Origin: Schmidtea polychroa
Taxonomy: Eukaryota
Direction of reading: 5' to 3'
Assembly (NCBI GenBank): GCA_044892525.1
Contig: CM097885.1
Location: 31,956,809 to 31,994,000, forward strand
DNA length: 37,192 nt
Both the position numbers and the translations under genes were made by a program. A model generated the notes under the pieces. It did not search any database and was not told where the DNA came from. It was given only the letters and a program-made list of their open reading frames with translations. This document shows, one piece after another, positions 16,898 through 36,761 of this stretch (within the stretch, counting starts at the first letter, position 1; each line of letters starts with the position of its first letter).

Positions 16898-17404
<507 letters not shown>

Positions 17405-18112
17405 TGACTAAATAGTGAGTCTAAGGTGACAGCTGAATCACGAAAAAGGCTTCCTCGCTCACTCTGACCTATACAGTCCCATCCTTCTCATTTCTCTTGG
17501 AATATTTGAAATTATTATTAAATGTCTACTACAAATATTTTGTAATAAATTTTATGATTTTATGAAGAATCATAAATATTTTTCAAACTCTTTCTTTTAA
17601 CTATTTCAACTTATTTGTTATTAAAACAAATTAATATAAATGCCAAAACAATCAGAAACTGAATAAACAACAAGTTAAAAAATTATATTTCCAGATTTAA
17701 GAAGAATTGATTAATTTGTATTAATTTTTGCCTCACGACACTATCGCACTTTTTCTGTTCAGCACCTAAAAGTGTCAACTAATTGACCCGAAGAGTCAAT
17801 TTGCCCGCATGCTCGAATTTATTAGTGTATATTTGCACTGTTACCGCCTTCACTGTTACTCAAGTTCATAAAGATCTGTGGTACTCAAACCATTAATATA
17901 AATATTAGTCTAAAATGTTTTATGAGCTTCATTTTTCAAAATTGCCTTACTTTTTCGAAATAATAATTTCATTGCATTCTTACAATTATGCCAGATATTC
18001 ATAACTTTGACAAATTTATTATCGCTTCCGTCTGTTTGAGATTTTAGTTATCAGTCAACAGAAAATAGAGATTAATTAAATTGTTTTGTAATTTTAAATA
18101 TAAAAAACATAA

Positions 18113-18547
<435 letters not shown>

Positions 18548-19938: not shown

Positions 19939-21900
19939 CTACAAATATTTTGAAAAAAAAAATTGAAAAAAAGTGCATGTGTATAATAAATATTTTGGGC
20001 ATTATACAAAATAGAACTTTTTTTCATTAATTTACAAAGTAGAACACTTTTTTAAAACCAGAACATCAGTTAATATTGAAAGTTTTTATACAAATAAGAT
20101 GATTTGAAATCATTGATTTCCAGAAATAATTAATAACATTAAAAAAACAGACAGCCTCTTTAAATTAAATTTTTTTATTAATTTTTTTTTGTCTTGGGGT
20201 TTTCCCACATTGTTTGAGCGCATCTATTAAAATGTGTTTAAATTAATCGAAAAATAGAATGGTTTGGGAAATTCAGCGGGGCACTTGATTCACTCGATTT
20301 CTTTCTAAGCCAGTGTTAATATCGACAATGTTGATATCGAAGGCGAAGTGCCTTGGAATGTGCAATTTTATCCCAAGAAAAGGATAAAGCTTGGAAAGTC
20401 TCTAATGAAATGAATAGTTTTCATAGAATGTATAAGCATCAGGTTTTCTGTCTTTGAATTTAGTGGACACATCTTTTCATATTATTTTAATTTATTCATT
20501 CCTATCAATAACTCAAGAAAAGTATTTGTGTTGAAACTTTAAACTAAGAGGCCACTCACAAAAACTGTTTATGTCTATATAAAAAAAGCCCAGTGTCGTC
20601 ATCGGATGCTGTGTGGCATTCTGTAACGAAATTTAACCAACTACGGATCCTCACTCCCAAAATGCCATACAAATACATAGAATATATTTAAATCGTTAAA
20701 GCTAATTTAGAAGACATACCTGAAATTTCTAAGAAATTAAATGGTTCAAGCCTATTATATGCAAGGAACTTTCACTGTAACTGCTGAATTAAATCAGCAG
20801 ATAAGCAGGCGTGGAATTTTATATAATATTATATAAACATCTAGTCAATTAAAGTCATATAACTGGTTTCTGTTAATATATCTCTTGCTTTATAGTACTC
20901 GTCTGCTGTACATTCACGCAAATTAATGACATGTAGATTATTTTTAACCCTTCCTAAGATGTTCTGAAATTATATAGAAATATCCCTTTAAAATCAATAA
21001 TACTCCGAATAAATTTTGACGAAGTTGAAGGTAATGACGTCAAAGTTTTTAAAGCATTATATTATAAACTTAAATAAACAAATTAGAAAGAATTAATAAA
21101 TTTAATATTTAGACTATTGACTCTTGGAGATAGGGTTTCTGTTTTTTGAGAGCCGTTTTCCGTTTTTACTAATATATAAATTCTGCAATAGAAGCGAAAT
21201 TTTTTTAAAAACTTTTTTGTTCTTTTATTTAAATCGAACTCCAAAGAGACCAGTGTGTGCTGATAGAATGTTAGCAGTTCCTATTTTTAACCATTTTTTC
21301 AAAAAATACTTTCCATATTTTTCATTAACACAATTTTTGCAAACAAATAAAAAATGCAAATATTAAAATAATTAAAAATGGGTTGAAAACTGCAATAACA
21401 AAGTGTGAGATCAATTTTTCGGAAGGTATCTGTGAATTTGAAATGTCACATAAGCTCATTAATATAAAAGAAGTGGATAGAATTTCAATTTTGCTAATTT
21501 CTTTTCTAAACAAATTATTTAACAAAGAATTTTTAAAATTGTGATGATTTGATTAGATTCTTTGTACGGAAAGTATATGTAAATAACACAACGAGAAAGA
21601 TATCTCTAAAGCCGTAATATTTATTCATCCAAAGCTAGTTAGACTAAATAAATAATATTTTCTAAAATATTATTTTTAAAGCTTTAAATTACTTTAACGG
21701 TTTTTAAAAAATTCGAATGTTTTTGTGCTAAAATGCGATACTAGCGCCACCTAGAAGATGCCAAGCTAAGTTCTATCCGCATAATCTGGAAAAAAATGTG
21801 AATTTCCTTTTAATTTTTAAACTAATTTCAATAGAATAAAGTAATTTTCACAGTGTTTTAATCCATAATGGATTATCCATTCTTTAAAAATTTGATTATA

Positions 21901-22150
21901 CACCCATACCTCGCTTTACGGCCTACATACGTTCCACGAAACTTGGCCGCAAAGCGAAAAGCCGTATAAGAAATCGAGATTGCGCTTGCGTAAGATTGGC
22001 AACATGTAGATATATCGACATCGAAAAAAAGTTTTTTTATGCCGTTATAGCGAAACATTTTAGGCCGTGAATCGAAAACGTGCCTTAATTAAAGAGGGCC
22101 GTTATAGCGAAATGCCGTATAAAGAGCGGCCGTATAGCGAGGTATGGATG
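21901..22150. mobile_element. Tc1/mariner(pogo)-type MITE, 250 bp
   Basis: TIRs CA(C/T)CCATACCTCGCT(T/A)TACGGCC; TA dinucleotide on both sides (21899-21900, 22151-22152); internal GCCGT(T)ATAGCGA repeats. Confidence 0.8.
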
Positions 22151-23550
22151 TATTATCCATAATTTTAGAGATATCAAGAATTTGGGATTATGCAACTAAG
22201 CGCAAAAATACAACAACAAATGAACTCGAAGGCATATGTAATCGATGCGGAAAAACAATCAAGTGCGTAAAATCCTCCGTTACTACTTTAAAGACACATC
22301 TCAAAGCAAATGGCATCATTATCGAGATGAATGAACAATCAAGTGAAGAACCCGCTTCAAAGAAACCAAAGACAATATGGGATTTCATGACAAAACCATT
22401 TCGGAAGGAAACAGTTTCTGATCTTGAAACCGAAGGGATTGCAATTAGAACAATAACGCGAAATAGCTATATCCGTAAATCGATTCAACGAGATGGCTTC
22501 AAACTACCAGAAAACGAGTCTGATGTGATGAAACCTTTGCTTGTCGAATACAACGAGAAGAGAGAAAAAATGGAGACTGAAATTCGCTCGATGATACAGG
22601 AAGTTAAATTCAGCATGACGGTCGACGAGTATACTACGATTCATGGCCCACACTTTATCGGAATCAACTTACACGATAGCGTAGAGAAAATGATATGGAA
22701 AACCGGAATTATTCGTATTTTGGGATCTTGCCCTGCCGAGGGCATGTTCAATTCTATCAAGCAGCATTTGATCTCATTTGGAATTAATCCTGAGTGTGAT
22801 CTTGATGCTTCAACTCAAGACAGTGCCGCTGTTAACAAAAAGTACATAAGGGTCCAGGGCGTTATTTGCCAATTTTGCTTTAATCATGCTTTTCACTCGG
22901 ATGTCACCGATACTCTTTACAAAAAGCAAGACAAGATTCAAGATGAAGTTGATTTTGATGAAAATGATGAATTCGACGGAACTGACTTTGAAATCATTGA
23001 TAGCAATACGAACGAATAAATTCAATATAATGAACTTTTCATACAAGCCAGGAAAGTAGTGAAGTACATTAAATTTTCACCAGTTAGGAATTATGCTTTT
23101 CAAGGTAAAGTAAAAGGAAAGCTGAACAAAGAAGTAAAACTGCATTTGGACGAGAAAAAACATCACTAGAATTCAATCCCAGAGCTATTTTAGCCACTCA
23201 TTGAGACTGAAGAAGCACTCAAAGAAACCTTAAAAGATCTCAACGCGAGTTATATGATCGAAAATCTTGATTTTGACGCAAGGTTTTGCTAGCTACGATG
23301 ACTCCAAAAAAACTGATCGTTGAAGTATTAAGCAGAGAAGATTAAACGCTTCAAACTGCAGACACCGATTTTATGTATCGCAAGCTTGCCGGTATGAAAA
23401 GTACAATAAGTGCGGTCTTCTCAAAAATTTGAAAAAAAGAGTGTATGAACGATGGAATCATGATGTAATGAATTTATTACGAGGTGTAAAGGATCCCAAC
23501 ATGGTGAGAACACATAACACAATTATTTATGAAGGAAAGCTCTTCACTCA
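22151..23550 (+). pseudogene. Decayed hAT transposase with N-terminal BED zinc finger, interrupted by the gypsy element
   Basis: IWDY...CNRCGKTIK...TTLKTHL (BED finger); SMTVDEYT (first catalytic D); STQDSAAVN; CFNHAFH (CxxH); degraded TRWNS near 23165. Stops and frameshifts after 23019. The annotated ATG at 22144 lies inside the MITE end. Confidence 0.85.
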
Positions 23551-23764
23551 TATTAGGATTCTCATCCGTTAAAACATTATTATCTGTTTGCAAATCATTA
23601 AACAATTCCATAAATTTTTATTTAATAAATTATACACTCAAAACTTTTGTTTCTTATTTAAACAAATTTCAATCTTTCTTTTTAAAATATTTTTCGATAA
23701 AAATATTTTTAAAATTTTACAAAATTTCTAATTAAAACATTTAGAATCTTTCATCTTCCTCATA
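23551..23764 (-). repeat. 3' LTR of the gypsy element
   Basis: Preceded on the minus strand by PPT AAGAAGGGGGA (23765-23775); termini TATGAGGA...TCCTAATA form an imperfect inverted repeat. Confidence 0.9.
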
Positions 23765-25023
23765 TCCCCCTTCTTAAGAATTTTTTTAAGTTTTTCCACG
23801 TTTCTTTCAATCTTTATTCCATTCTCATTTATTAAGATATATCGCCTGTCATGCACTTTCTCGATTACTTTATATGGTCCCTCATATCTGTCTTGGCTTT
23901 TGTTGCGTGTTTCTAATTTTACTAACACATTTTCTCCTACGTTGAATTCCCTCCTTGTTTGTTCTTCTTGTTCTTCCTTTACCTGTTTTTCTTTGACCCG
24001 TACCACTTTTCCCTGCTAATTTTTTTTCCAAAAACTATCTCTGCCGGAATTTTTCCTGTCGCTTTTTGTTTGGTTGCGTTTAATGTAAATTCGACTTCTG
24101 GTAGTATCTCTGCCCAATCCGTCTTCCTTCTGTCTCGTAAAGTAGCATATATCAGCTCTCGTATTGTCCTTAATTGCATTTCTATCTGTCAATTTATTTG
24201 GTGATGGTATGGACTCGAAAAACACAACTTAATATCAATCATCTTTGTGAATTCTCTCATCATTCCTGATTCCCACAATCAACTCTTATCTACTTTGAGC
24301 ATCCAAATCTTAAAATCCATTTTTCTAAAATCGTTTTATTTATTGTTTCCTCGTTTTGTCTTGTTATAGCTGTCAAGACTTGATACTTACTATACTTATT
24401 ATACCCAATATATACATTATATATATAGTATATATACCCAATATATTATACATTTCGGTTGATTCTAGATTTTTTACTGGTTCCTTCGTTGTAATTGTTA
24501 TAGCCTTGGTTTTTTGGCAAGTCTCACAACTTCGAATAGTTTCCTGAATCTGACTCCACAGGTTTTTCCTAATATATCTATCTTTCATATAATGGGCTAT
24601 CTTCTCAACTCCAGCCTGACACAATAGTCTATGAATTTCCTTTATGGTTTCTTGTATCTCGTTTTCTGGTATCATCGTTTACTTTCGTCATTCTTTTTTC
24701 AAGTTTCCATGTTGATTGGGGCTTTCACCTTCTTCTCTGATCGAGTCTAGTAATCTAGTTTTTATCTTTCCTCTCTTAGCTTCTTCATGAGCCATTTGAC
24801 ATTGAACACACGTTTCACATATAGTTCTAGACATCATGTCTGAATTTTGGTGATTAACACCCTTTCTATATTCAACGATCATATCTAAACTGCTCAAATA
24901 ATTGATCCAGGTTTGGAATTGTGAAGTAATTGGCTACTTGGTTGTCATCATAAACGTGACCGCCTTGTGGCCTGTCCTTAGCGTGAATCTCCTTCCGTAG
25001 AGATAGTACTAGAAATGAATACA
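23765..25023 (-). pseudogene. pol: Gypsy pol 3' part: rest of RNase H and integrase (degenerate)
   Basis: YLYGRRFTLRTDH and EYRKGVNHQNSDMMSR (RNase H); IHRLLCQ...CETCQ (HHCC remnant); SSPYHHQ...QIE core; RYEGPYKVIEKV (GPY/F motif). Confidence 0.9.
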
Positions 25024-25657
25024 AGTAGATGGTATGGTCACCGCTAGAACAGGTCACCGCTGGAACAAAGACATTTTTACCCCACCCCCCCCCCGGCCGG
25101 AAAAAATTTTTAAAAATTTTTTTTTCAAGAACAAAGACATATGACTCATCCGATGACTCATCAAGCATTCAAGGTCGACTTAAGAACAAAGACATATGAC
25201 TCATCCGATGATATATAATTATTATTATTTTTAAAAATATTATTATTTCTAATGTCTTTGTTCCAGCGGTGACCTACTATTTGGCCTGCCAAAAGTTATC
25301 GTTCCCATCAACCTATTTCATCGATCGATAGCTTATTTTGAAGCTTGGTGCAAGACCTTTCGAATGAGCTATTGTTGTTATCACCATCTTTAATATTGAC
25401 AAAGTNNNNNNNNNNNNNNNNNNNNNNNNNNNNNNNNNNNNNNNNNNNNNNNNNNNNNNNNNNNNNNNNNNNNNNNNNNNNNNNNNNNNNNNNNNNNNNN
25501 NNNNNNNNNNNNNNNNNNNNNNNNNNNNNNNNNNNNNNNNNNNNNNNNNNNNNNNNNNNNNNNNNNNNNNNNNNNNNNNCTCCGAGTTTATCCGACAAAA
25601 TATTTTGTCCCCCTATGGGTAATGCTCACAAGGGTACTGGTCACGCTCAACAAATCA
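25024..25657 (+). repeat. Left TIR of the Polinton-like element
   Basis: Reverse complement of 33586-34208, including an N run at the same position; differs by repeat-unit slippage and a few inner substitutions. Confidence 0.92.
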
Positions 25658-25682
25658 ACAAATCAACAAAACATACATTTAT

Positions 25683-26183
25683 TTAAACAATAAAATAATG
25701 TAAAATTAACAAAGGTGAACTAAATATTGATGTACTACTATTCGCAGCAATATTGTTAGAAATTGGTAACGTTGAATTGATTTTCAGATATTCTATTGAT
25801 CCTTTGATTGTTTGAATTTCTCTTAATAATAATTCAATCTTTTTTAATAAATAATCATGCTTCTTATCAATAATTTTCATATTCTTTTTATTTTCAACAA
25901 TAGAGTTATTGAAAACCTCAATATGATCAATCAATTTAATTTTTATATTTTGTATATATTCAAATGATAGTTCATAACTGTTTTCCAAATTCTCCAATCT
26001 TTGAGATATTCTTTTTCCTGGATGCTTTGACCATTTTGGTTTGTCGAGAATATATAAAATATCCATCAACTTGGCTGTATTCGGACAAACACATATTGAT
26101 TTATTAAAAGACTCCACTGTTATTGTTGTATTGTGTGAGCACACACTCGTTATAATAATTAGCAATATGAATATAGTTTTCAT
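25683..26183 (-). CDS. Secreted or GPI-anchored glycoprotein-like protein with coiled coil (166 aa)
   Basis: N-terminal MKTIFILLIIITSVCS signal peptide; heptad-like central region; NxS/T sites (NTT, NKS, NNS, NST, NSS); small-residue stretch followed by a hydrophobic C-terminal tail; TATA ~30 nt upstream. Confidence 0.65.
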   Translation of the reverse strand: MKTIFILLIIITSVCSHNTTITVESFNKSICVCPNTAKLMDILYILDKPKWSKHPGKRISQRLENLENSYELSFEYIQNIKIKLIDHIEVFNNSIVENKKNMKIIDKKHDYLLKKIELLLREIQTIKGSIEYLKINSTLPISNNIAANSSTSIFSSPLLILHYFIV

Positions 26184-26288
26184 GGTGTATCAAATCAAAA
26201 CCATTCTTTTACATTTATAGTCTATCAACCAATCAAAATCATACAGTATTAGTATAAATAAAACATCATATTTTAAATTATTGTAAAA

Positions 26289-26795
26289 ATGTCTCATTTT
26301 ATGGAAAAACTTTTCTCGTCAACAAGAATATTATGGAAAGCCTAAGTTTCCTGGTCGATCGGACCGAAAAGATTATAGAAGGTAATCACATTGATTATGA
26401 GGACGTGCTCAATTCCGATTCCCTCGAAACGAAGAAATTCTATTTTAATAGGATTTTAACTGTCTATGCGACGAGGAGATGAAGTGGACCCGAATATTAG
26501 TAGGGTTCGCTTATATGAAGATCATAATGGAAAGAAGTCTATGGGACTCTGAACATTATTATCAGTGGTCTCAAGAAGTAATACTTTTATAATCTATATT
26601 TTATTAATATTTATTTTCTAGATAATCAAGTCAAAGTTTCAGCCATGGATTGAAGCCAATGGCGGATGGGGCGTGCTGAATCAACTCGCCAGAAATGCAA
26701 AGGAAATAGATCAGCAGAAAATCAAATTTAAAAACTATTTAAAACTTGCAACAGGTGTTGCTATTTTGTATGTTTTATGTCGGTTTTTTAAATAA
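26289..26795 (+). CDS. Bcl-2 family protein (BH3-like, BH1, BH2, C-terminal TM) with a 44-nt intron (26578-26621) and apparent 1-nt frameshift(s); possibly a pseudogene or sequence error
   Basis: BH1-like DEEMKWTRILVGFAY (26470-26514); BH2 WIEANGGW (26646-26669); tail LATGVAILYVLCRFFK*; GT...TTTTCTAG phase-0 intron. The upstream part (MESLSFLVDRTEKII..., from 26333) is in another frame, with a shift near 26467 and possibly near 26292. Confidence 0.8.
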
Positions 26796-26872
26796 AAATT
26801 AATATAGTTATTTTGTTTGATTTTTAAATAAAATTTTAAATAAATTTACAAACACTAATTAACTAAGATTTA

Positions 26873-27154
26873 TTAATTAACACATTCGCAGTCGTCATCT
26901 CCACATTTCATTATATTTTCAACGACATGATCAATACAATCGTTCGTAATATTATCTTTAGATTCATCTTTAGGTTCCTCTATAGGTTCCTCTATAGGTT
27001 CATCTATAGGTTCATAGATTTCCTCTTGAGTTTCTTCCTCATCATCAAATCCTGTATCTTGACTCTCAACTAACCAGCCGATATTTAAGGCATTTGTAAT
27101 AGATAATATGTCCTCAATTTTCACACCAGATATTTCTGCTAACTTTTCCAACAA
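26873..27154 (-). CDS. Small acidic protein with EPI(D/E)E repeats; start uncertain
   Basis: Open frame with coding-like composition; no in-frame ATG found, so it may have an upstream exon or a frameshift. Confidence 0.4.
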   Translation of the reverse strand: MLEKLAEISGVKIEDILSITNALNIGWLVESQDTGFDDEEETQEEIYEPIDEPIEEPIEEPKDESKDNITNDCIDHVVENIMKCGDDDCECVN

Positions 27155-27360
27155 AAGGTTGATTAAAAATTCAAAATAATAAATAATTCGGTAATTAATA
27201 AATCATGTTAACCTTTTTCTGCAGTCATTTTCATCACTTTAAAACTATATTATAAGTTTGTTTATAGATTTTCTTTGTTAAATTTGCATGTCATTTGCAT
27301 TTATGTTGCAATTAATAAAGAGAAAAACAAATCTGACTAATACATTTATTAAATATAACA

Positions 27361-27789
27361 TTAAAATATTTGTGAAAGTCTAGGAGACATAATTTTCCAA
27401 ATAGGAGAATATACATCATTATTATCAACTTTATATCCCTGGATTGCAATTATTATATACCAATTTTCATTTTCTTTGAAACTGATTTCATCAAAAGCAT
27501 CATAAAATCTTGCATATCTATTGTTGAACCACGCATGTTGATTACACGATAGATTCGAATCTATCCGTTTAAAAACATCATCAATAGTTTTGACATCAAT
27601 CATTGAAAGCGTGCCGGATAAGAATTCAAATTTAGTTGGAATTAGCTTGACTGGTGCAACCAATTTCATATTGATTTCTTCTTTCAAAAAATACATTTTG
27701 TAGTTGTGGAACATTTGAACTGGTTGTACCATTTGAACTGGTTGTATCATTTCTTTAGGTTTTTCGGTGCTTGAAATTTTCTTAGTCAT
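27361..27789 (-). CDS. Hypothetical 142-aa protein, possibly OB-fold/ssDNA-binding-like
   Basis: ATG-to-stop ORF with TATAAAAA at 27830-27823. The C-terminal IIIAIQGYKV...YSPIWKI pattern recalls viral gp32-like SSB beta strands (weak inference). Confidence 0.6.
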   Translation of the reverse strand: MTKKISSTEKPKEMIQPVQMVQPVQMFHNYKMYFLKEEINMKLVAPVKLIPTKFEFLSGTLSMIDVKTIDDVFKRIDSNLSCNQHAWFNNRYARFYDAFDEISFKENENWYIIIAIQGYKVDNNDVYSPIWKIMSPRLSQIF

Positions 27790-28163
27790 CGTGAATAATG
27801 AATAAATTTAAATGTTACAGGGTTTTTATACCTTTGACTCATGCCTATCAACCAATCAGATTATAGCATGTCTTTGTTTAAATTGCATTCAAAATGCATT
27901 GATGTTGCATTGTCACATGTTCTATTATTTTTATTAATGTTTTATTATTATTAATGTTTTNNNNNNNNNNNNNNNNNNNNNNNNNNNNNNNNNNNNNNNN
28001 NNNNNNNNNNNNNNNNNNNNNNNNNNNNNNNNNNNNNNNNNNNNNNNNNNNNNNNNNNNNNNNNNNNNNNNNNNNNNNNNNNNNNNNNNNNNNNNNNNNN
28101 NNNNNNNNNNNNNNNNNNNNNNNNNNNNNNNNNNNNNNNNATAAAACACAATAAAAAATACAT

Positions 28164-28581
28164 TTATAGGTAACCTAAATCTACAATCCGGGAGTAGTGA
28201 AACCTTCTCAGAGTTTTCACTAACTCCCATTCGACATATCGCCGATATTGATCGGCACAGCATGAGCATCCGATGATGCATTGGTACTCCGGCTCCATTT
28301 GTTTCATAGTTCTGTTGATTTTCACATTCCATAAAAATTGGTGAAATACCTCCATTATTCTAATTTGCGTGGCATAAAAAATCAAATCAGGGATGATTTC
28401 CGGTTCCCGATCTTTGATTACTTCAGCAATTTGCGGATAATAATATTTTATCCTATTAATCATTATTTTTAAATATTTTTCTAAAATAATAAATATAAAA
28501 AAATGTGAAAATAAAAATTTTAAATTTACCATAATCATCAATATCCTTCATGAGATTCGCGGCGCTCGGAATTTTGTACAT
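28164..28581 (-). CDS. Spliced hypothetical protein (exons 28581-28530 and 28480-28164; 49-nt intron); CxxxCxCC motif
   Basis: ATG 28581 MYKIPSAANLMKDIDDY-G|GTAAATT...TTTTAG|AA restores the frame (...DDYEKYLKIMINRIK...). The ORF track's N-terminus is intron read-through. Confidence 0.7.
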
Positions 28582-28653
28582 AGTGAAATAAATGAATCCT
28601 AAACAAAAAACCGTTTGTTTAAATCAATCAATAACCAATTAGAAATTAACCAA

Positions 28654-29091
28654 TTAGAAATCGACCAATGAAATTATCTCATTTCGAACCTTGTCAACAA
28701 ATTCTCTATACTCCAAATTTCTCAACCCCAACATGACAACCTTTCCACTAGCAAACACGTTGACACATATAGGGTTATATTTTAATAGTCTTAGTGCCGG
28801 AAACAATTCCGGTTCAAACATACAATCACATTTTTTCGATATGTTATATAGATTGATACTATGTCCCATATCCATAGTAACGGTAATTGATTGGATTATA
28901 ATATTATTTATTCGATATTGTAATTTATTAATATCCAAAGGTTTCTTACATCCCATGATTCTGCATTTACCAGTCTTGAAAAATATTATCGGATATTTCC
29001 CACTTCTATCGATAATTTGCTGGGGTTTCCCTGGTGGGAACCTCATATTCGATACATCAAAATTTCCTCGATAATTTATATTTGCTAACAT
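28654..29091 (-). CDS. TATA-binding-protein (TBP)-like protein, minimal two-repeat core (145 aa)
   Basis: Repeat 2 FEPELFPALRL...VNVFASGKVVMLG matches TBP YEPELFPGLIY...LIFxSGKVVLTG; repeat 1 IIFFKTGKCRIMGCK matches LIFSSGKMVCTGAK; QSITVTMDMGHSINL matches QNMVGSCDVxFPIRL. Confidence 0.85.
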   Translation of the reverse strand: MLANINYRGNFDVSNMRFPPGKPQQIIDRSGKYPIIFFKTGKCRIMGCKKPLDINKLQYRINNIIIQSITVTMDMGHSINLYNISKKCDCMFEPELFPALRLLKYNPICVNVFASGKVVMLGLRNLEYREFVDKVRNEIISLVDF

Positions 29092-29190
29092 TATTAAATC
29101 ATTTATGAAAATTAGTCTTTATATACAAATTGAGCACGAGTTCATTAAATCATCGAATATAAACAAATACACATATATAAAATCTTTGAA

Positions 29191-29817
29191 ATGGAATTAA
29201 GAAATGATGCAGTATACCAAATCGTTGGTCCGAGTGGTAGTGGAAAAACATTATTTGTTTGTAAATTACTAAAATCAAATTTATTCAAATCAAAATTCAA
29301 CAGGATTTATTGGCATAGGGGTGCTGATGAAGAACATGGATTAACTCAATCAAGTTTCTGTAAATTAAAAAACATGAAAATAGTAAAGGGATTCGATAAA
29401 AACTGGTCCAGCCGATTAAAGAAAGGTGATGTCATTATTATCGATGATTTGTATCAAGAAGCTAATAAAGAAAAAGATTTTAATAATTTATTTTCAAAGA
29501 TCAGCAGACATGTCGGTGTAACAGTTATTTTCATAACACAAAATCTATTTCATCAAGGTGGGGCACATCGAACACGTAATTTAAATGTACAATATTTAGT
29601 CATTTTCAAGAATCCTAGAGATGCAACAGTGATTGATTTTCTTGCACGTCAAGCATACCCTAACAATCGTAATTTTCTTATCAGTGCATTTCAAGATGCT
29701 ACAAAAATACCTCATGGATATATATTTCTTGATTTCACACAACAATGTCCCGATGATTTACGTGTAAAAACAGATATCTTCAACCCAAAAGGTGTCATGG
29801 TTTATAAACAAAGTTGA
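29191..29817 (+). CDS. Polinton A32-like (FtsK/HerA) DNA-packaging ATPase
   Basis: Walker A GPSGSGKT; Walker B IIIDD; ITQNLF, FKNPRD, LARQAYP and PHGYIFLD motifs typical of Polinton ATPases. Confidence 0.92.
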   Translation: MELRNDAVYQIVGPSGSGKTLFVCKLLKSNLFKSKFNRIYWHRGADEEHGLTQSSFCKLKNMKIVKGFDKNWSSRLKKGDVIIIDDLYQEANKEKDFNNLFSKISRHVGVTVIFITQNLFHQGGAHRTRNLNVQYLVIFKNPRDATVIDFLARQAYPNNRNFLISAFQDATKIPHGYIFLDFTQQCPDDLRVKTDIFNPKGVMVYKQS

Positions 29818-29875
29818 AAACCTCTATGAATAATAATGTTTCTAAAAGCAAGGGTGAAAAATATTAGGAAATTAA

Positions 29876-32800
29876 GAAAAAGTATTAGAAAGAGTATTAA
29901 AGTTCCAAAAGTTCCACCAACAACTAGTTATACACCGTCTAAAAAACTTTTTCTCCAATAACGCCGAAGTTTTTTCCGATAATTTTCTATTAGAGGGCAT
30001 CACTAAGTTAAATAATAAAATTGAAAAATTCACCTATTTAGGAAGCGGATGGCGGGTTGTTAGGATAAAAGAAATAGATTTTATAATAAATAAATATAAA
30101 TGTATAAATAGATTAGCTGGACATAGTTACATCCCCACCCCAGCGGCTTTAAATTCTAAAAAAGCAATTGTAAATATACAGAACACAGATGATATGTGTT
30201 TCATCTATAGTATTCTAGCCCTCTTAAAGCGTGATATTATACACCGCAATAGGCACCGTGTTACTGCTTATGAGAGTTATTTAAACGAGATCAATTTCGA
30301 CCCTATTAGTGATTGCCCGATGAAATTATGTGACATACCCAAATTTGAACGCAAAAACAGTGAACTGAACTTGGCTATTAACGTTTTAACTTATAGGAAT
30401 AAACCAGCTAAGCCTATTGAACATCAAGATATAGATTATATTCCCCATCACCCACATCTAGATATTATTCACCGCTCTAAGGTTATAGGTGGTGAACCCA
30501 TATATTTATTATTATTAGAAGACGGTAGTTATTTTCATTACACCGCAGTTTTTGATCTGCAAAAACTTATGAATTGTCATCCTAATAATTCCTGTAATAT
30601 ACAAATTTGCGTAAAATGGTGTCCTCATTGCCTTAATGGCTTTAGATATAATAAGATATTTAATATACATGTAGATTTATGTAGTAAGAACCAAATAGGT
30701 ACTACATTGTATACCCTACCTAAGGACAAAAATTTAATTTTTAAAGATTTTTCCAAAAGAATAACCCCGCCATTCGTGATATATGCCGATTTTGAGGCAA
30801 TTTTACCTGAAGACATCACCCACCACCAAAAACATATGCCAATAACAGCAGGCATGTTATTAATTAATAATTATAATAATACCAGATTTTATTATGAGTT
30901 TGTTGGGGATGATTGTGTGTTGTCTTTCTTGCGTAAGGTGGAGGAAATTGCTGTCACAATTGTCCTACCATATTACGAAATTAATGGGAAAAAGCCCATG
31001 CAAACCTTGTCTTTCACTGAAGAACGTGTTTTTCGAGAATCCAGAACCTGTTACCTTTGTAAAAAATTCATTAAAGATAGAGTTAGGGATCATTGTCACT
31101 TCACAGGCAAGTATCTTGGTGCTGCCTGTAGGAACTGTAATGTTTCGCGACGAATTCAGAAACAGTTACCGGTTGTCTTTCACAATTTGAGGGGGTATGA
31201 TTTACATCATATTTTGAAGTATGGTTTGAATAATTTTCCTTCTTGGGAATTAAATATTATTCCGACTACTACTGAGAAATTCATCTCCCTCATCGCGTAT
31301 ATTAACAAATTGCCTGTTCGTTTTATTGACAGCATGCAGTTTGTTAATTCATCTTTAGCAAAAGCAGTTAAAACTCTTTCCGATCTGCCTTTAACTTCTT
31401 CTGTTTTTGATGGCGCAATTGTTCGAGCCAAAGGTATCTTTCCTTATGACTTTGCTACATCGCTTGAGGTTCTGGAATCGACTCTTGAACTACCTCCGAT
31501 CTGGGATTCTGTGTCTAATGATGAGTATGCATTAGCCCAAGTTATTTGGACTCAGCAAAATTGCAACAACATGTTAGATTACATGTTAACTTACCTTAAA
31601 TTAGACGTGTTTCTCCTCGCAGATTATTTTACTCAATTCCGTGAAAAGGCCATTGCTTACAATGGTCTGGAGCCTCTTAATTTCTATGGCATTCCCGGTA
31701 TGTCATGGGCCTCAGCGCTTATGACATTAACGGAACCCATTGAACTTCTGCAGGACATGGAAATGTTTAATTTCTATGAAGGAGGGATACGGGGTGGGTT
31801 AACATTTGTTAACAAACATTATGTTGTAAGTTCTGAAGACACAGAACTCTTGTATATTGACATAAATAACTTGTATGGTTGGGCCTTAAGCCAAAAGCTT
31901 CCGTATGCTGACTTTGAATGGGTGTATGATGATCTTGATTCTGTCTTGAATGAATGTATGAATGAGGATATTGAAAATCTTCCATATGGATATACAATGG
32001 AAGTAGATATTGATATCCCTCAGTGTGTGCATGATTTTTTGAATGATTTTCCGATTGCTCCGGAAAAAATGTGCCCGCCAGATTCGAAAGTTGAGAAGCT
32101 GATGCTCACGCATTGGCCGAAGAAGAACCATGTTCTTCATTGGCGACTTCTCAAGTTGTATATAGAATTGGGGGCTGTAATTAAAAATGTACATAGGGCA
32201 ATTAAATTTAAACATGCACCCATTTTTAAAGATTACATATCGACTAATACTAATTTGCGCTCAAATTCTACATGCGAGCTGCATAGAGATTTATATAAAT
32301 TATTTAATAATAGTCTGTATGGGAAATCCGTGGAAAACCTTAAAAAACGGATGAATTTGAGGCTATGCAATTCAGCTGAAAAGATGATTGTATATGCTTC
32401 AAAGCCGACTTTCAAGAAATCAATCAAAATGGCTGATGACTTGATTGCTGCACATCTAAATAAGGATTCTATATGTTTAGACAGGCCTATCTACATTGGC
32501 CAATCTGTGCTAGACCTGTCTAAACTGAGGATGTACCAGTTACAGTATATAGAATTGGCAAAATATCGTTTAGAGTTTAACTGTGATATAAATATCGTTG
32601 CCGGCGACACCGACTCCTTTTTCTTAGAGATAAAGCACTGTAAGCTTGACACTCTTTTGCCGGCAATGATTCGTGATAATCTTCTAGATACCAGCAATTA
32701 TGATCCTGCTCATCCTTTGTATTCAAAGAGTTTGGATTCTGTGATAGGGAAATTTAAGGACGAAAGTAAAGGGCTTGGTTATAAGGAGTGGGTTTTCTTG

Positions 32801-33295
32801 CGCCCTAAGTGTTATAGTTTGTTAGGAGATAAGGCAACACTTAGGGCTAAGGGAGTTCAGCTTGGTAATACTGAGATAGAGCACCAGTCTTATTTAGACT
32901 GCTACAACAACAGCGTAGTATATACGGTGCCACAAACTAGAATAGGGACTCGTAACCACCAGCTCTTTACTTTTAAGAACAGTAAAATAGCCTTGTCGAA
33001 CAACGATGACAAGAGACTATGGGTGGGGCCTAATTCCAGTCTGGCATATGGGCATTATTTAGGATTTGACGAAACTGATGATGGTCAGATATTTTCTGAA
33101 GTAGGACCACATTTTGGTGGCTTGAGTCCAGACCTTGACGATGACTCGGATCCTGATAATCCTGATATTCCTGGTCAGATATTCGAAGAGATTGGCCCGT
33201 TTTTTGGGGGTTTGAGCCCCGATTTTGATGAAGACTCAGACATTTTTATTAGAGAAATCGGCATCGATATTGACGATGTCATTTTATCAGATTAA
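29876..33295 (+). CDS. polB: Protein-primed family B DNA polymerase (pPolB) with an endonuclease VII-like zinc domain; the true start lies upstream of 30194
   Basis: Frame open from 29876 and includes the Polinton N-terminal GSGW...SYIP...KKAIVNIQN motif; DHCHFTGKYLGAAC; Exo I YADFE, Exo II FHNLRGYD, Exo III YLKLDV; Pol A DINNLYG, B KLFNNSLYGK, C GDTDS. Confidence 0.95.
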   Translation, partial: EKVLERVLKFQKFHQQLVIHRLKNFFSNNAEVFSDNFLLEGITKLNNKIEKFTYLGSGWRVVRIKEIDFIINKYKCINRLAGHSYIPTPAALNSKKAIVNIQNTDDMCFIYSILALLKRDIIHRNRHRVTAYESYLNEINFDPISDCPMKLCDIPKFERKNSELNLAINVLTYRNKPAKPIEHQDIDYIPHHPHLDIIHRSKVIGGEPIYLLLLEDGSYFHYTAVFDLQKLMNCHPNNSCNIQICVKWCPHCLNGFRYNKIFNIHVDLCSKNQIGTTLYTLPKDKNLIFKDFSKRITPPFVIYADFEAILPEDITHHQKHMPITAGMLLINNYNNTRFYYEFVGDDCVLSFLRKVEEIAVTIVLPYYEINGKKPMQTLSFTEERVFRESRTCYLCKKFIKDRVRDHCHFTGKYLGAACRNCNVSRRIQKQLPVVFHNLRGYDLHHILKYGLNNFPSWELNIIPTTTEKFISLIAYINKLPVRFIDSMQFVNSSLAKAVKTLSDLPLTSSVFDGAIVRAKGIFPYDFATSLEVLESTLELPPIWDSVSNDEYALAQVIWTQQNCNNMLDYMLTYLKLDVFLLADYFTQFREKAIAYNGLEPLNFYGIPGMSWASALMTLTEPIELLQDMEMFNFYEGGIRGGLTFVNKHYVVSSEDTELLYIDINNLYGWALSQKLPYADFEWVYDDLDSVLNECMNEDIENLPYGYTMEVDIDIPQCVHDFLNDFPIAPEKMCPPDSKVEKLMLTHWPKKNHVLHWRLLKLYIELGAVIKNVHRAIKFKHAPIFKDYISTNTNLRSNSTCELHRDLYKLFNNSLYGKSVENLKKRMNLRLCNSAEKMIVYASKPTFKKSIKMADDLIAAHLNKDSICLDRPIYIGQSVLDLSKLRMYQLQYIELAKYRLEFNCDINIVAGDTDSFFLEIKHCKLDTLLPAMIRDNLLDTSNYDPAHPLYSKSLDSVIGKFKDESKGLGYKEWVFLRPKCYSLLGDKATLRAKGVQLGNTEIEHQSYLDCYNNSVVYTVPQTRIGTRNHQLFTFKNSKIALSNNDDKRLWVGPNSSLAYGHYLGFDETDDGQIFSEVGPHFGGLSPDLDDDSDPDNPDIPGQIFEEIGPFFGGLSPDFDEDSDIFIREIGIDIDDVILSD

Positions 33296-33543
33296 TTTGT
33301 GTTTTAATATATTTTTAAAAAAAAAATAGTCTTTATATTGTTTTATTTCGTTTTATTGAAAACTGGTGATAGTTTTCAAGGTTCTTACAACAGTTAAACG
33401 CTTGTATAAATATATAAAAATTTGATTATTTCACACAAGTGTTAACTTTTGAAAGAATTTTGTTAGAAATTTTATATTTTTATTGTGTAATAGTGTTGCA
33501 GTGGGCACGCAACATTATTTATCTGTTGATAGGATTTTTTTTT

Positions 33544-33545
<2 letters not shown>

Positions 33546-33580
<35 letters not shown>
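33546..33580. repeat. (AAT)n microsatellite just inside the right TIR
   Basis: About 11 AAT units read directly. Confidence 0.9.
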
Positions 33581-33581
<1 letters not shown>

Positions 33582-33585
33582 CCTT

Positions 33586-34208
33586 GTGAGTTGTTGAGCA
33601 TGAGCAGTACCCTTTTGAGCATTACCCATAGGGGGACAAAATATTTTGTCGGATAAACTCGGAGNNNNNNNNNNNNNNNNNNNNNNNNNNNNNNNNNNNN
33701 NNNNNNNNNNNNNNNNNNNNNNNNNNNNNNNNNNNNNNNNNNNNNNNNNNNNNNNNNNNNNNNNNNNNNNNNNNNNNNNNNNNNNNNNNNNNNNNNNNNN
33801 NNNNNNNNNNNNNNNNNNNNNNNNNNNNNNNNNNNACTTTGTCAATATTAAAGATGGTGATAACAACAATAGCTCATTCGAAAGGTCTTGCACCAAGCTT
33901 CAAAATAAGCTATCGATCGATGAAATAGGTTGATGGGAACGATAACTTTTGGCAGGCCAAATAGTAGGTCACCGCTGGAACAAAGACATTAGAAATAATA
34001 ATAATTATATATCATCGGATGAGTCATATGTCTTTGTTCTTAAGTCGACCTTGAATGCTTGATGAGTCATCGGATGAGTCATCGGATGAGTCATATGTCT
34101 TTGTTCTTGAAAAAAAATTTTATAATTTTTTCCGGCCGGGGGGGGGGTGGGGTAAAAATGTCTTTGTTCCAGCGGTGACCTGTTCTAGCGGTGACCATAC
34201 CATCTACT
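33586..34208 (-). repeat. Right TIR of the Polinton-like element
   Basis: Inverted copy of the left TIR; one extra GATGAGTCATCG unit. Confidence 0.92.
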
Positions 34209-34214
34209 AATACA

Positions 34215-35825
34215 AAAATAGTATAGCACCAATAGTTCCTTTCTTTTAATGCAATATCGTTTTTCATGGCTCGTCATCGAGTGTAATCCATACGCAATTA
34301 CTCTCTCCTTTCCATCTTTCCAATCCCTCGAATATGTTATTCGTTCCTTCAATTCATTCAGGTTTTTTGTTACTCGGACCGCTACATAATTGTTCTAACA
34401 TCCTTGGTTCCTTTGCATACTCAATGATGAATTTTCAATAATAATTGCAAATGCCTAGGAAGCTTCAAAGTTTCTTTACGCAACTTGGCTTCCCAAAGTT
34501 TTGTATAGCCTGAATTTTAGAAGGATCTGTCTGTAATCCTTCTTTGCTGAGTATGCATCCTAAGAATCTGATTTCTCTGTGTATTATTTGACATTTCTGG
34601 GTTAATCTTTAGTCCTGCTTCCTCGATCGCTTTTAATACTTCACTGAGTATTGTATAATCCTTTTCTTTACTATTCGAATAAATCAAAATGTCATCCAAA
34701 TTCACTATTGCTCCATTTATTTTGCCTATTACCTTTGTCATAATTTCCTGGAACGTACCTGGTGCTGCAGCAATTCCGAACGACATTCTATTGAAACAGT
34801 ATTGCTCTTTCTTTGTTGAGAAGGCTGTTTTCCCTTGCGCTTTACCAAGATCAATTGAGCTAAAAAAACGGACCCTCCTAACAAATCTAACATCTCGTCT
34901 ATGTTTGGCATTGGGAATGCTTGCCTCTCTGTTACTGCATTCTGCTGTCTGAAATCCAAGCATAACCTAATATCCTTTTTCTCTTTTTTCCAAAGCAGAT
35001 TAAAGGCGTGTTTCATGGGGAGTTGCATTTCCATATAATCCCGTTTTCGTACAAATTTTGTATTGCTTCTTTAATTTTTGTTCACAAATTTAATGGTTGA
35101 CGATATGGTTTTATGTTTATTGGTTCACTTCTTGTAATTATCTTATGTTTTACTAATTGTGTTCGACCCACATCCCATTTATCCCACATAAACATGTTTC
35201 CACTGTTTGTTATTATTTCCTTTAATTTACTATCCTCATTAATCTTTAGGTGTTCCAACGCTCGCGTCAATCGTTCTCCATCCTTTATTTTTCTGCCAAA
35301 TTTGGCTTCAATTTTACAAATATAGTTCTTGTCTTTTTCACAAGTTTCGATATCTTTCTTTTTTTCCAACCTATATCCAAATGCTTCTTGTAATTCTACT
35401 CCTACAATCACCTCTGGTGTCACTTTCTCCGCCACAATGAATCTAACTTCATTGGAAATATCTTCGATAGTTATTTTAACCTTTGTTCTTCCAATTGTCT
35501 CTATCGTACTTTCGTTTGCACATCGTAACTTATTGTCGCTTCTCATCAATTGTTATTCTAGTAACTTGTTATAACAGTTCACACTCATTACGTTTATTCG
35601 TGCTCCGGTGTCTAATAAACAGTCGAAAATTTTCCCATTCATCATTACTGTTACACTAGGTCTTCCATGTAGCTTGTTATACACAATTTCTACCTCCTGC
35701 CCCGTTTCAATTGTTCCAATTCTTTCCAGTTCCTCTTCAAACCTTTCTCTCCTTAGGAACCTGTATACTTTCTCACTTACCCTTCCTACATTCTCCCACT
35801 TTTCTACCCCTTGAGGATATCCCAT
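34215..35825 (-). pseudogene. pol: Gypsy pol 5' part: protease, reverse transcriptase and start of RNase H (degenerate)
   Basis: CLLDTGARINVM (aspartic protease); IRLCLDFRQQNAVT...FPMPNID; FNRMSFGIAAAPGTFQ; VNLDDILIYS (YxDD equivalent). Many frameshifts. Confidence 0.92.
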
Positions 35826-35949
35826 CCACTTTTCTGTTAGTATATGTCTCCAACCAACTCCTCTACTGGTGGCGCCCTAATGTTTAGGTACGTCCTACTA
35901 AAATTATCGTACGATTCCATTCCCTCTTCTTCCTCGATTTCATTAATCC

Positions 35950-36761
35950 GACTGTATCTGTTTCCTGCCGGTCTTTGTTTCTCTATCGTTTTCTTGTAAC
36001 TCGACTTTGTTTAACATTCTTTAGATCTATGACCATTTCTGTTGCATCTTTTACACCGTATTTCTTGACATAACCTTCTTATATGACCTTCTTTCCCACA
36101 ACCAAAACATCTTGGAACTTTTTTATCTGGAAAGTTCCTACTTATATGTCCGATTCTGTGATACGTCCAGTACTCTATCTTACTTATTTTCGTGTGGCCT
36201 ATATTTTGGCATAGCCAGCACTCTGGCTCTTCTCGTCTCCTGCCTTCTTCTCTTTCATCTTTCTGCTGGTACTGTACTCTTCCCTGTGGATCATGATAGA
36301 CCACTCTTGAGTAACTTTTCATAGCGTTTCTCCCCGTTATTCATCAAAATTAATGTTTCCTTTATCTCATCTGTGCTTTTTATCTTCCGGAATATTACTT
36401 CTTTCTCAACTTCTTTATTCTCAGCACATACTATCAACATCTTTGCTGTTATTTTCTCTTTGGTGAATTCTTTGTTCTCAAACAACCTGTCGACAAGGCC
36501 CTCCACTTTTTAAAAAATATGTTTCAATCTCTTCGCCTCTTCTTTTAAAATTCAATAAACTTTCCATATCCTTTATTACGTCTCTTTCGTAATCAAATGC
36601 CATTCGTAACCTGGCTTGAAATCCTTTTGCTTTTGAAGTGTTTTTGCATATTTTTCCAATTGATCCTCGTCGATTATACATGCATTCAATCTTTCTTGTT
36701 CTTTTTTATTGATGCCTTTAGCATCGAAAAAAATCTCGCATCTTCTAATAAACTTTTCCAA
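35950..36761 (-). pseudogene. gag: Gypsy gag (frameshifted) with multiple CCHC zinc knuckles
   Basis: CFGCGKEGHIRRLC and CKRCNRNGHRSKEC intact, two more degenerate knuckles; reading frame broken into several short ORFs. Confidence 0.85.

Follow-up and report, generated by a model that had tools for sequence, protein, structure and literature searches.

Structure of the element and its insertion site

The DNA analysed here is a 37,192-nucleotide stretch of Schmidtea polychroa contig CM097885.1, hereafter the window, which is AT-rich (G+C content ~28%) and contains a Polinton-type element of 9.2 kb at positions 25024-34208. The terminal bases of the element are AG on the left (25024) and CT on the right (34208), and between its terminal inverted repeats (TIRs) lie a gene for a protein-primed family-B DNA polymerase (PolB), a gene for a packaging ATPase and an arm of six accessory genes (o166, a Bcl-2-like gene, o93, o142, o125 and a TBP-like gene; coordinates in Table 1). 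An initial annotation of the locus had described these bounds and termini, TIRs of ~630 bp, a 6-bp target-site duplication, the polymerase, an A32-like ATPase and six accessory genes, and all of these were confirmed in the sequence.

The first 21 bases of the element have exactly two occurrences in the window, one at either end in inverted orientation, with none expected by chance. Over their outer 373-382 bases the two TIR arms share 360 matching positions and differ by one mismatch and four indels (one substitution per 361 aligned bases, or ~0.3%), and a few further positions differ in the inner ~77 bases. The window contains five runs of N, all of different length, three of which fall inside the element. 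The two that interrupt the TIR arms lie at the same TIR offsets and are of nearly equal length (174 nt at 25406-25579 and 171 nt at 33665-33835). Because both runs start and stop at the same points of the TIR, the arms are collinear across them, and the same stretch of the repeat is therefore unread or masked in both arms.

The 11-mer GAACAAAGACA is present four times in each TIR (three direct copies and one inverted), at 25063-25263 and 33978-34169, and nowhere else in the window (0.06 occurrences expected). These copies are candidate protein-binding sites.

The element sits within a Ty3/gypsy-like long terminal repeat (LTR) retroelement that is itself represented by several pieces of open reading frame (ORF), between the RNase H and integrase regions of that retroelement. 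When the pol protein of a sibling retroelement was aligned over both flanks it matched the right flank only, and continuity of the flanks was judged by the order of their Pfam domains. Since consecutive domains of one retroelement lie on the two sides and are bordered by a perfect duplication, a clean insertion is confirmed.

Gene order in related elements

Relatives of the element were obtained as ~45 metagenome loci, found by searches with PolB, the ATPase and a capsid gene from a sibling element. In these loci the region 3' of the ATPase gene is highly regular. The next gene encodes a protein of 109 amino acids (aa) in all 32 related loci that have downstream sequence, and an rve integrase gene follows it in all 27 loci that reach that far. 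In longer relatives the integrase gene is followed by one to three paralogous genes for proteins of 330-345 aa and then by genes for proteins of 114, 409 and 159 aa, and full-length sibling contigs measure 15-16.3 kb. The ATPase gene adjoins PolB, as it does in the window, in none of the 32 loci. In one sibling, L001, the ATPase, integrase, virion and PolB genes all lie on one strand, and from the gene spacing in L001 a parent of ~15 kb and a deletion of ~6 kb can be deduced. The orientation of PolB varies among the other relatives; it is convergent with the virion genes in at least eight loci and lies upstream in two.

The virion genes of the siblings had no match when searched by sequence only, either by PDB profile search or in Pfam. 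An AlphaFold2 (AF2) model of the sibling 409-aa protein, built with 40 homologues, reached a pLDDT of 88 and a pTM of 0.87, and Foldseek matched it to the capsid proteins of PBCV-1 (Vp54), an iridovirus, mavirus and Sputnik (E = 3e-15 to 1e-12). The predicted structure identifies it as a double jelly-roll major capsid protein. Candidates for minor capsid (penton) proteins are those of 114 aa and 330-345 aa. A protease of the Ulp1/adenain clan is also encoded in a sibling (L086; Pfam Peptidase_C48, E = 4e-21).

The number of 330-345-aa genes differs among siblings. Three tandem paralogues that are 29-50% identical lie between the integrase and capsid genes at L092:6353-9377, and also in L093 and L094, with one or two in other siblings. 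Many separate ENA assemblies include, among their largest contigs, nearly the same contig of 15-16.3 kb (L092, L093, L094 and the P0004 cluster), a recurrence that may point to the full-length sibling being present in many copies or in free form. No TIRs were found in the 16.3-kb sibling contig, which probably ends within collapsed repeats. The 21-base TIR terminus of the element in the window had no match in 89 fetched loci or in IMG/VR, no relatives of the ATPase were found in IMG/VR, and exact look-ups of the ATPase and the TBP-like protein of the window returned nothing on record.

Genes absent from the element

None of the integration and virion genes of these relatives was found in the window. 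Searches by tblastn with sibling proteins (E ≤ 1e-3) recovered no homologue of the integrase, capsid proteins or protease in the window, and neither tblastn with four sibling integrases nor Pfam searches of all ORFs identified an rve integrase belonging to the element. Likewise, the window contains no homologue of the double jelly-roll major capsid protein or of the 114-aa and 330-345-aa sibling proteins, and no match to an adenain/Ulp1-type cysteine protease. The genes wholly gone are thus those for the 109-aa protein, the integrase, the 330-345-aa protein or proteins, the 114-aa protein, the capsid protein, the 159-aa protein and the protease. The absence of integrase, capsid and protease genes that the initial annotation had reported is upheld by these searches.

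The third N run inside the element (Table 1) had been suggested as a possible hiding place for the absent genes. This concern is moot, because the syntenic site of those genes, between the ATPase and PolB, lies within the gap-free interval 28141-33664. In siblings the interval between o142 and TBP, where this run is found, spans 60-800 bp and contains no integrase or capsid gene. ORFs that had been listed through the run are artefacts consisting of X only.

A truncated polymerase gene next to an intact ATPase gene

The ATPase is full length and intact, with 69-77% identity to those of siblings. PolB is of the pfam03175 type, with a Pfam DNA_pol_B_2 match (E = 1.8e-28), an Endonuclease VII-like finger and the polymerase motifs present, and it is 45-61% identical to the PolBs of related elements. 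Over ~1040 aligned codons it has no internal stop or frameshift.

The 5' end of PolB is different. Alignments to nine full-length relatives all start at one point of the window, 29951-29954, which corresponds to residues 75-204 of those relatives. The ~70 residues just before this point are conserved among the nine (E = 1e-7 to 1e-23), and even at E ≤ 1 no counterpart of this block was found in the element. The PolB frame remains open for a short distance upstream of 29951, and it has no start codon before the first Met at 30194, which aligns with residues 231-271 of the relatives. PolB thus has one break, its 5' truncation, and no breaks are present in the ATPase, TBP or o142 genes.

At its other end PolB carries an acidic C-terminal tail of ~70 aa (33080-33295) with an internal tandem duplication. 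This tail is found in none of the relatives, whose polymerases stop soon after the last conserved motif.

An OTU-like domain at the N-terminus of PolB was reported for the Alpha class of adintoviruses from a structure-based comparison (PMC8502044). Pfam identified no OTU domain in the N-terminal 305 residues of the PolB in the window or in the relative P0001, and Cys/His motifs were seen there by eye only.

A probable internal-deletion derivative

These results make it likely that the element is a young, non-autonomous internal-deletion derivative of a Polinton/Maverick with a PolB of the Alpha adintovirus-like class. This interpretation is drawn from features that are observed directly, namely the termini with their duplication, the set of genes present, the synteny seen in relatives and the abrupt start of homology within PolB. 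An internal deletion of ~6 kb would have removed the 109-aa gene, the rve integrase gene, a virion module comprising the 330-345-aa genes, the 114-aa gene, the double jelly-roll capsid gene and the 159-aa gene, as well as the 5' part of the PolB gene. The simplest origin would be one deletion in a collinear parent of ~15 kb with the order ATPase, integrase, virion genes and PolB, as in L001. A parent with the convergent layout would require an additional inversion, and with either parent the loss of integrase and capsid genes would be secondary. What the deletion would have left is both TIRs, the accessory arm (the TBP-like gene, the Bcl-2-like gene, o142 and three small ORFs), the ATPase and a polymerase lacking its N-terminal block and start codon.

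The duplication and the ends show that an rve-type integrase once acted on the element, and this enzyme must have come from another element. Because integrase, capsid proteins and protease are all absent, integration or packaging of the element can have taken place only with functions supplied in trans. We infer that this copy is non-autonomous, needs integrase and capsid proteins in trans and makes no particles of its own, in agreement with the earlier proposal that these proteins are borrowed.

The polymerase is probably impaired as well, since the missing N-terminus is conserved and this part of the protein carries the priming function in other protein-primed systems. In fungal linear plasmids, for example, the N-terminal part of the protein-primed polymerase supplies the protein primer. 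If N-terminal priming holds here, the enzyme would be dead for replication, and it is doubtful that the element could copy itself. The near identity of the TIR arms indicates that the event was recent, and a recent origin by itself accounts for the open state of the remaining ORFs; their intactness would thus reflect youth, not selection.

Several points weigh against this interpretation. In PolB even the closest relatives reach only 53-61% identity, so that the end points of the deletion are not definable base by base, and the collinear layout that a single deletion calls for is seen in one sibling (L001) only. The open frame of 1140 codons that remains, the ATPase and TBP are all intact, which would also fit selection on a reduced element, and translation from an internal Met might in principle yield a shortened polymerase with every catalytic motif.

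The initial annotation had suggested that the element may be a distinct class, a self-replicating Polinton that had kept its replicase and gained host-manipulation cargo. The first part of this view is not supported, as in relatives the interval between the ATPase and PolB is precisely where an rve integrase gene and a double jelly-roll capsid gene lie. Siblings encoding integrase and capsids had been named in that annotation as what would reduce this copy to an ordinary deletion derivative, and such siblings exist at the level of the lineage, among the metagenome relatives. A retained replicase is not supported in view of the 5' truncation of PolB, in which a block conserved in nine relatives has been lost together with the start codon and the catalytic part is intact. 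As for cargo, TBP was found in 14 sibling loci, o142 in nine and Bcl-2 in L003 and L092-L094, all of them adjoining the ATPase in complete elements. Full-length relatives have these genes as well, so they are not a gain of the reduced copy.

Alternative explanations

A different account of the same features is that the deletion arose in a replicating element, in the manner of defective-interfering genomes, and that the reduced form has since been packaged, integrated and amplified by full-length relatives as a propagating helper-dependent lineage, which would retain the ATPase, TBP, the Bcl-2-like gene and the shortened polymerase as a competitive aid. That integrase acted on these ends is shown by the intact TIRs and the perfect duplication, every retained long ORF is open, and a near-identical segment spanning o142 and o93 occurs in two other samples, so the family exists beyond this locus. 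However, the right-hand break cuts into a conserved part of PolB and took away the start codon, which is unexpected if a replicase were under selection, and the junction of ATPase and PolB has no counterpart among the 32 related loci. Intact ORFs are also expected without selection at a TIR divergence of ~0.3%, and the near-identical contigs from other samples stop before the junction. We consider such a lineage unlikely. There is only a slim chance that the deleted form is a transmissible helper-dependent Polinton, defective-interfering-like or satellite-like, that is amplified by full-length relatives in the same host; such a form would keep the ATPase, the TBP-like factor, the Bcl-2-like gene, a possible single-stranded DNA (ssDNA)-binding protein and the shortened polymerase.

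Two further explanations appear far less probable. The junction or the joins at N runs might combine different Polinton copies during assembly or scaffolding, such that the true locus is full length. Three N runs do lie within the element, repeated elements are hard to assemble, and a second PolB fragment in the window shows that this genome has other Polinton copies. Nevertheless, the junction between ATPase and PolB falls within one uninterrupted stretch (28141-33664), the TIR arms are collinear over their N runs of 174 and 171 nt, and the flanks are consecutive domains of one retroelement with a perfect duplication. The remaining N run lies between o142 and TBP, where the missing block is never found in siblings, and an artefact is therefore very improbable. 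Scarcely any weight is given to the idea that the element is a naturally small replicon without integrase or capsid, similar to a linear plasmid, that shares genes with Polintons. A PolB gene and TIRs in the absence of virion genes would fit such a replicon, but the 6-bp duplication and the AG...CT ends are signatures of an integrase, and both in sequence (45-77% identity) and in synteny the genes match those of elements that bear integrase and capsid genes. In addition, the polymerase is truncated rather than compact, and a packaging ATPase would have no role where there is no capsid.

Comparison with known elements

Polintons, also called Mavericks, are reportedly the subject of accounts by Kapitonov and Jurka in 2006 and by Pritham and colleagues in 2007. 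With the Alpha adintovirus-like members of this group the element shares a pfam03175-type protein-primed PolB with an extra N-terminal region, an A32/FtsK ATPase, long TIRs with AG...CT ends, a 6-bp duplication and a Bcl-2-type accessory gene, and its relatives have the rve integrase, double jelly-roll capsid protein and clan-CE protease of the group. In contrast, the element itself measures 9.2 kb instead of 15-20 kb, lacks integrase, virion and protease genes and has a 5'-truncated PolB. Anti-apoptotic Bcl-2 homologues were reported for adintoviruses (Starrett et al. 2021, PMC8502044), and the same paper lists TBP-like genes for related midsize linear double-stranded DNA (dsDNA) viruses.

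In form the element fits non-autonomous derivatives of DNA transposons. In the element both ends and the duplication are kept, the integration enzyme is gone, the remaining genes are collinear with those of autonomous relatives, and one break point cuts a gene, PolB, that is complete in the relatives. Such derivatives likewise keep TIRs and duplication, lose the integration enzyme, stay collinear and have one break inside a gene, although the element is unusually large and gene-rich for one. Non-autonomous Polintons are listed in Repbase, internal-deletion derivatives of DNA transposons are known, and deletion derivatives of transposons and virus-like elements are common. That the element lacks the integrase, capsid and protease by which membership of the Polintons is judged is best attributed to the deletion alone, and the element is best filed as a non-autonomous deletion derivative and not as a new class.

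In adenoviruses and other linear dsDNA replicons with protein-primed replication, defective-interfering genomes have internal deletions, keep both terminal repeats and obtain virion proteins from a complete genome. The element resembles them in its internal deletion with both terminal repeats kept and in its dependence on a complete genome for virion proteins; however, those genomes are episomal and arise during infection, whereas the element is chromosomally integrated and is known here as an integrated copy alone. Virophages, polinton-like viruses and satellite-like elements share with it the DNA-packaging ATPase family and a life cycle for part of which a second element or virus is needed, but they have capsid proteins of their own and form separate lineages, whereas the element is capsid-less and its genes nest in a lineage of complete Polintons.

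Together, the relatives outline a coherent animal-associated lineage of Polinton/adintovirus-like elements that is widespread in metagenomes and carries a TBP-like gene, a conserved gene for a 142-aa protein with a giant-virus-like fold and, in some cases, a Bcl-2 homologue beside the packaging ATPase. Sequence searches alone were insufficient for the 409-aa protein of this lineage, which could be assigned as a double jelly-roll capsid protein through its predicted structure. With its intact ends and near lack of decay, a young deletion copy of this kind can also serve, by sequence comparison, as a marker for recent activity of full-length partners in the host.

The accessory arm

Table 1. Coordinates of the element's features and of its flanks (positions in the window)
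Feature	Position	Strand	Remarks
Left flank: Ty3/gypsy-like retroelement, integrase end	23728..25017	-	Integrase_H2C2 and SH3_Tf2-1 (Pfam)
Left target-site duplication, AATACA	25018..25023	.	Read directly; same as 34209-34214
Left TIR	25024..25657	+	AG start; four GAACAAAGACA copies; N run 25406-25579
o166, 166 aa	25683..26183	-	Signal-peptide-like hydrophobic N-terminus, several N-x-S/T motifs, coiled coil, hydrophobic C-terminus
Bcl-2-like gene, three ORF pieces with two interruptions	26333..26798	+	Last piece compared with sibling Bcl-2; weak support
o93, 93 aa, acidic	26873..27154	-	Near-identical copy in two ENA metagenome contigs
o142, 142 aa, intact	27361..27789	-	tblastn to siblings; structure model
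Third N run, 180 nt	27961..28140	.	Between o142 and the o125/TBP side
o125 gene	28164..28581 (125-aa ORF 28164-28541)	-	3' end heads into N run 27961-28140
TBP-like gene, 145 aa, intact	28654..29091	-	Pfam TBP, E = 2e-15
A32/FtsK-type packaging ATPase, 208 aa	29191..29817	+	Pox_A32, E = 5e-7; Walker motifs
ATPase-PolB spacer, 133 bp, gap-free	29818..29950	.	~6 kb of genes here in relatives
Protein-primed family-B DNA polymerase (PolB), 5'-truncated	29951..33295 (ORF from Met 30194)	+	DNA_pol_B_2, E = 1.8e-28
Right TIR	33587..34208	-	CT end; N run 33665-33835
Right target-site duplication, AATACA	34209..34214	.	Perfect 6-bp copy of the left one
Right flank: gag zinc knuckle, protease, reverse transcriptase and RNase H of the same retroelement	34215..36506	-	Pfam

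The TBP-like gene proposed earlier is well supported, as its Pfam match is accompanied by PDB sequence matches to TATA-binding proteins (E down to 8e-11), and the protein is 44-58% identical to sibling TBPs. For the Bcl-2-like gene, a plus-strand signal at 26333-26798 bears out the earlier proposal in part, and the individual matches are weak. The last of the three ORF pieces resembles the BH2 region of a sibling Bcl-2 that was validated by Pfam (pairwise E = 3e-4), and all 44 of its matches among PDB sequences are Bcl-xL or Bcl-2 chains, each individually weak (E = 0.1-2). The pieces had no match when searched separately in Pfam. Each of the two interruptions could be a short intron or a break. 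The minus-strand gene o125 was considered as a Bcl-2-like gene and rejected, since it gave no Pfam, PDB or pairwise signal and the Bcl-2-like signal is on the other strand.

Homologues of o142 adjoin TBP or the ATPase in the nine sibling loci identified by tblastn, and a representative library contains 38 relatives. Its AF2 model (pLDDT 88) matched dozens of uncharacterised giant-virus proteins in BFVD (E = 1e-5) and, weakly, the OB-fold ssDNA-binding proteins of phage Enc34 and African swine fever virus in the PDB (E = 0.07-0.2). On this modelled structure o142 may be an OB-fold DNA-binding protein. Comparison of the model ruled out a jelly-roll or integrase fold for o142, which answers for this ORF the earlier suggestion that an accessory ORF might be a divergent capsid or integrase protein.

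No homologues of o166, o93 or o125 were detected in related elements. For o166, the ORF to which the surface protein of the initial annotation corresponds, the comparison covered 38 sibling loci, and Pfam returned only weak coiled-coil matches; its N-x-S/T motifs are of the N-glycosylation type.

Two short ENA metagenome contigs (L090:276-1257 and L091:170-1070) are near-identical to positions 26820-27789 of the window, with 12-14 mismatches over ~0.9 kb. Those samples therefore contain either the same element family or the same host. Both contigs stop short of the junction between ATPase and PolB and are thus silent on its structure.

Other features of the window

A second PolB fragment lies on the minus strand at 20450-21238. 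It is far more divergent (26-40% identical to sibling PolBs) than the PolB of the element and is what is left of a different Polinton-type element in the window. Two other ORFs are long for AT-rich sequence: one of 483 aa at 3465-4916 on the minus strand, which had no Pfam match, and one of 291 aa at 22144-23019 on the plus strand, which had a weak match to the BED zinc finger. The window also contains, on the plus strand, a metazoan homeobox gene of the NK1/slou class with two exons (16901-17407 and 18116-18547), the first ORF of which begins directly after an N run.

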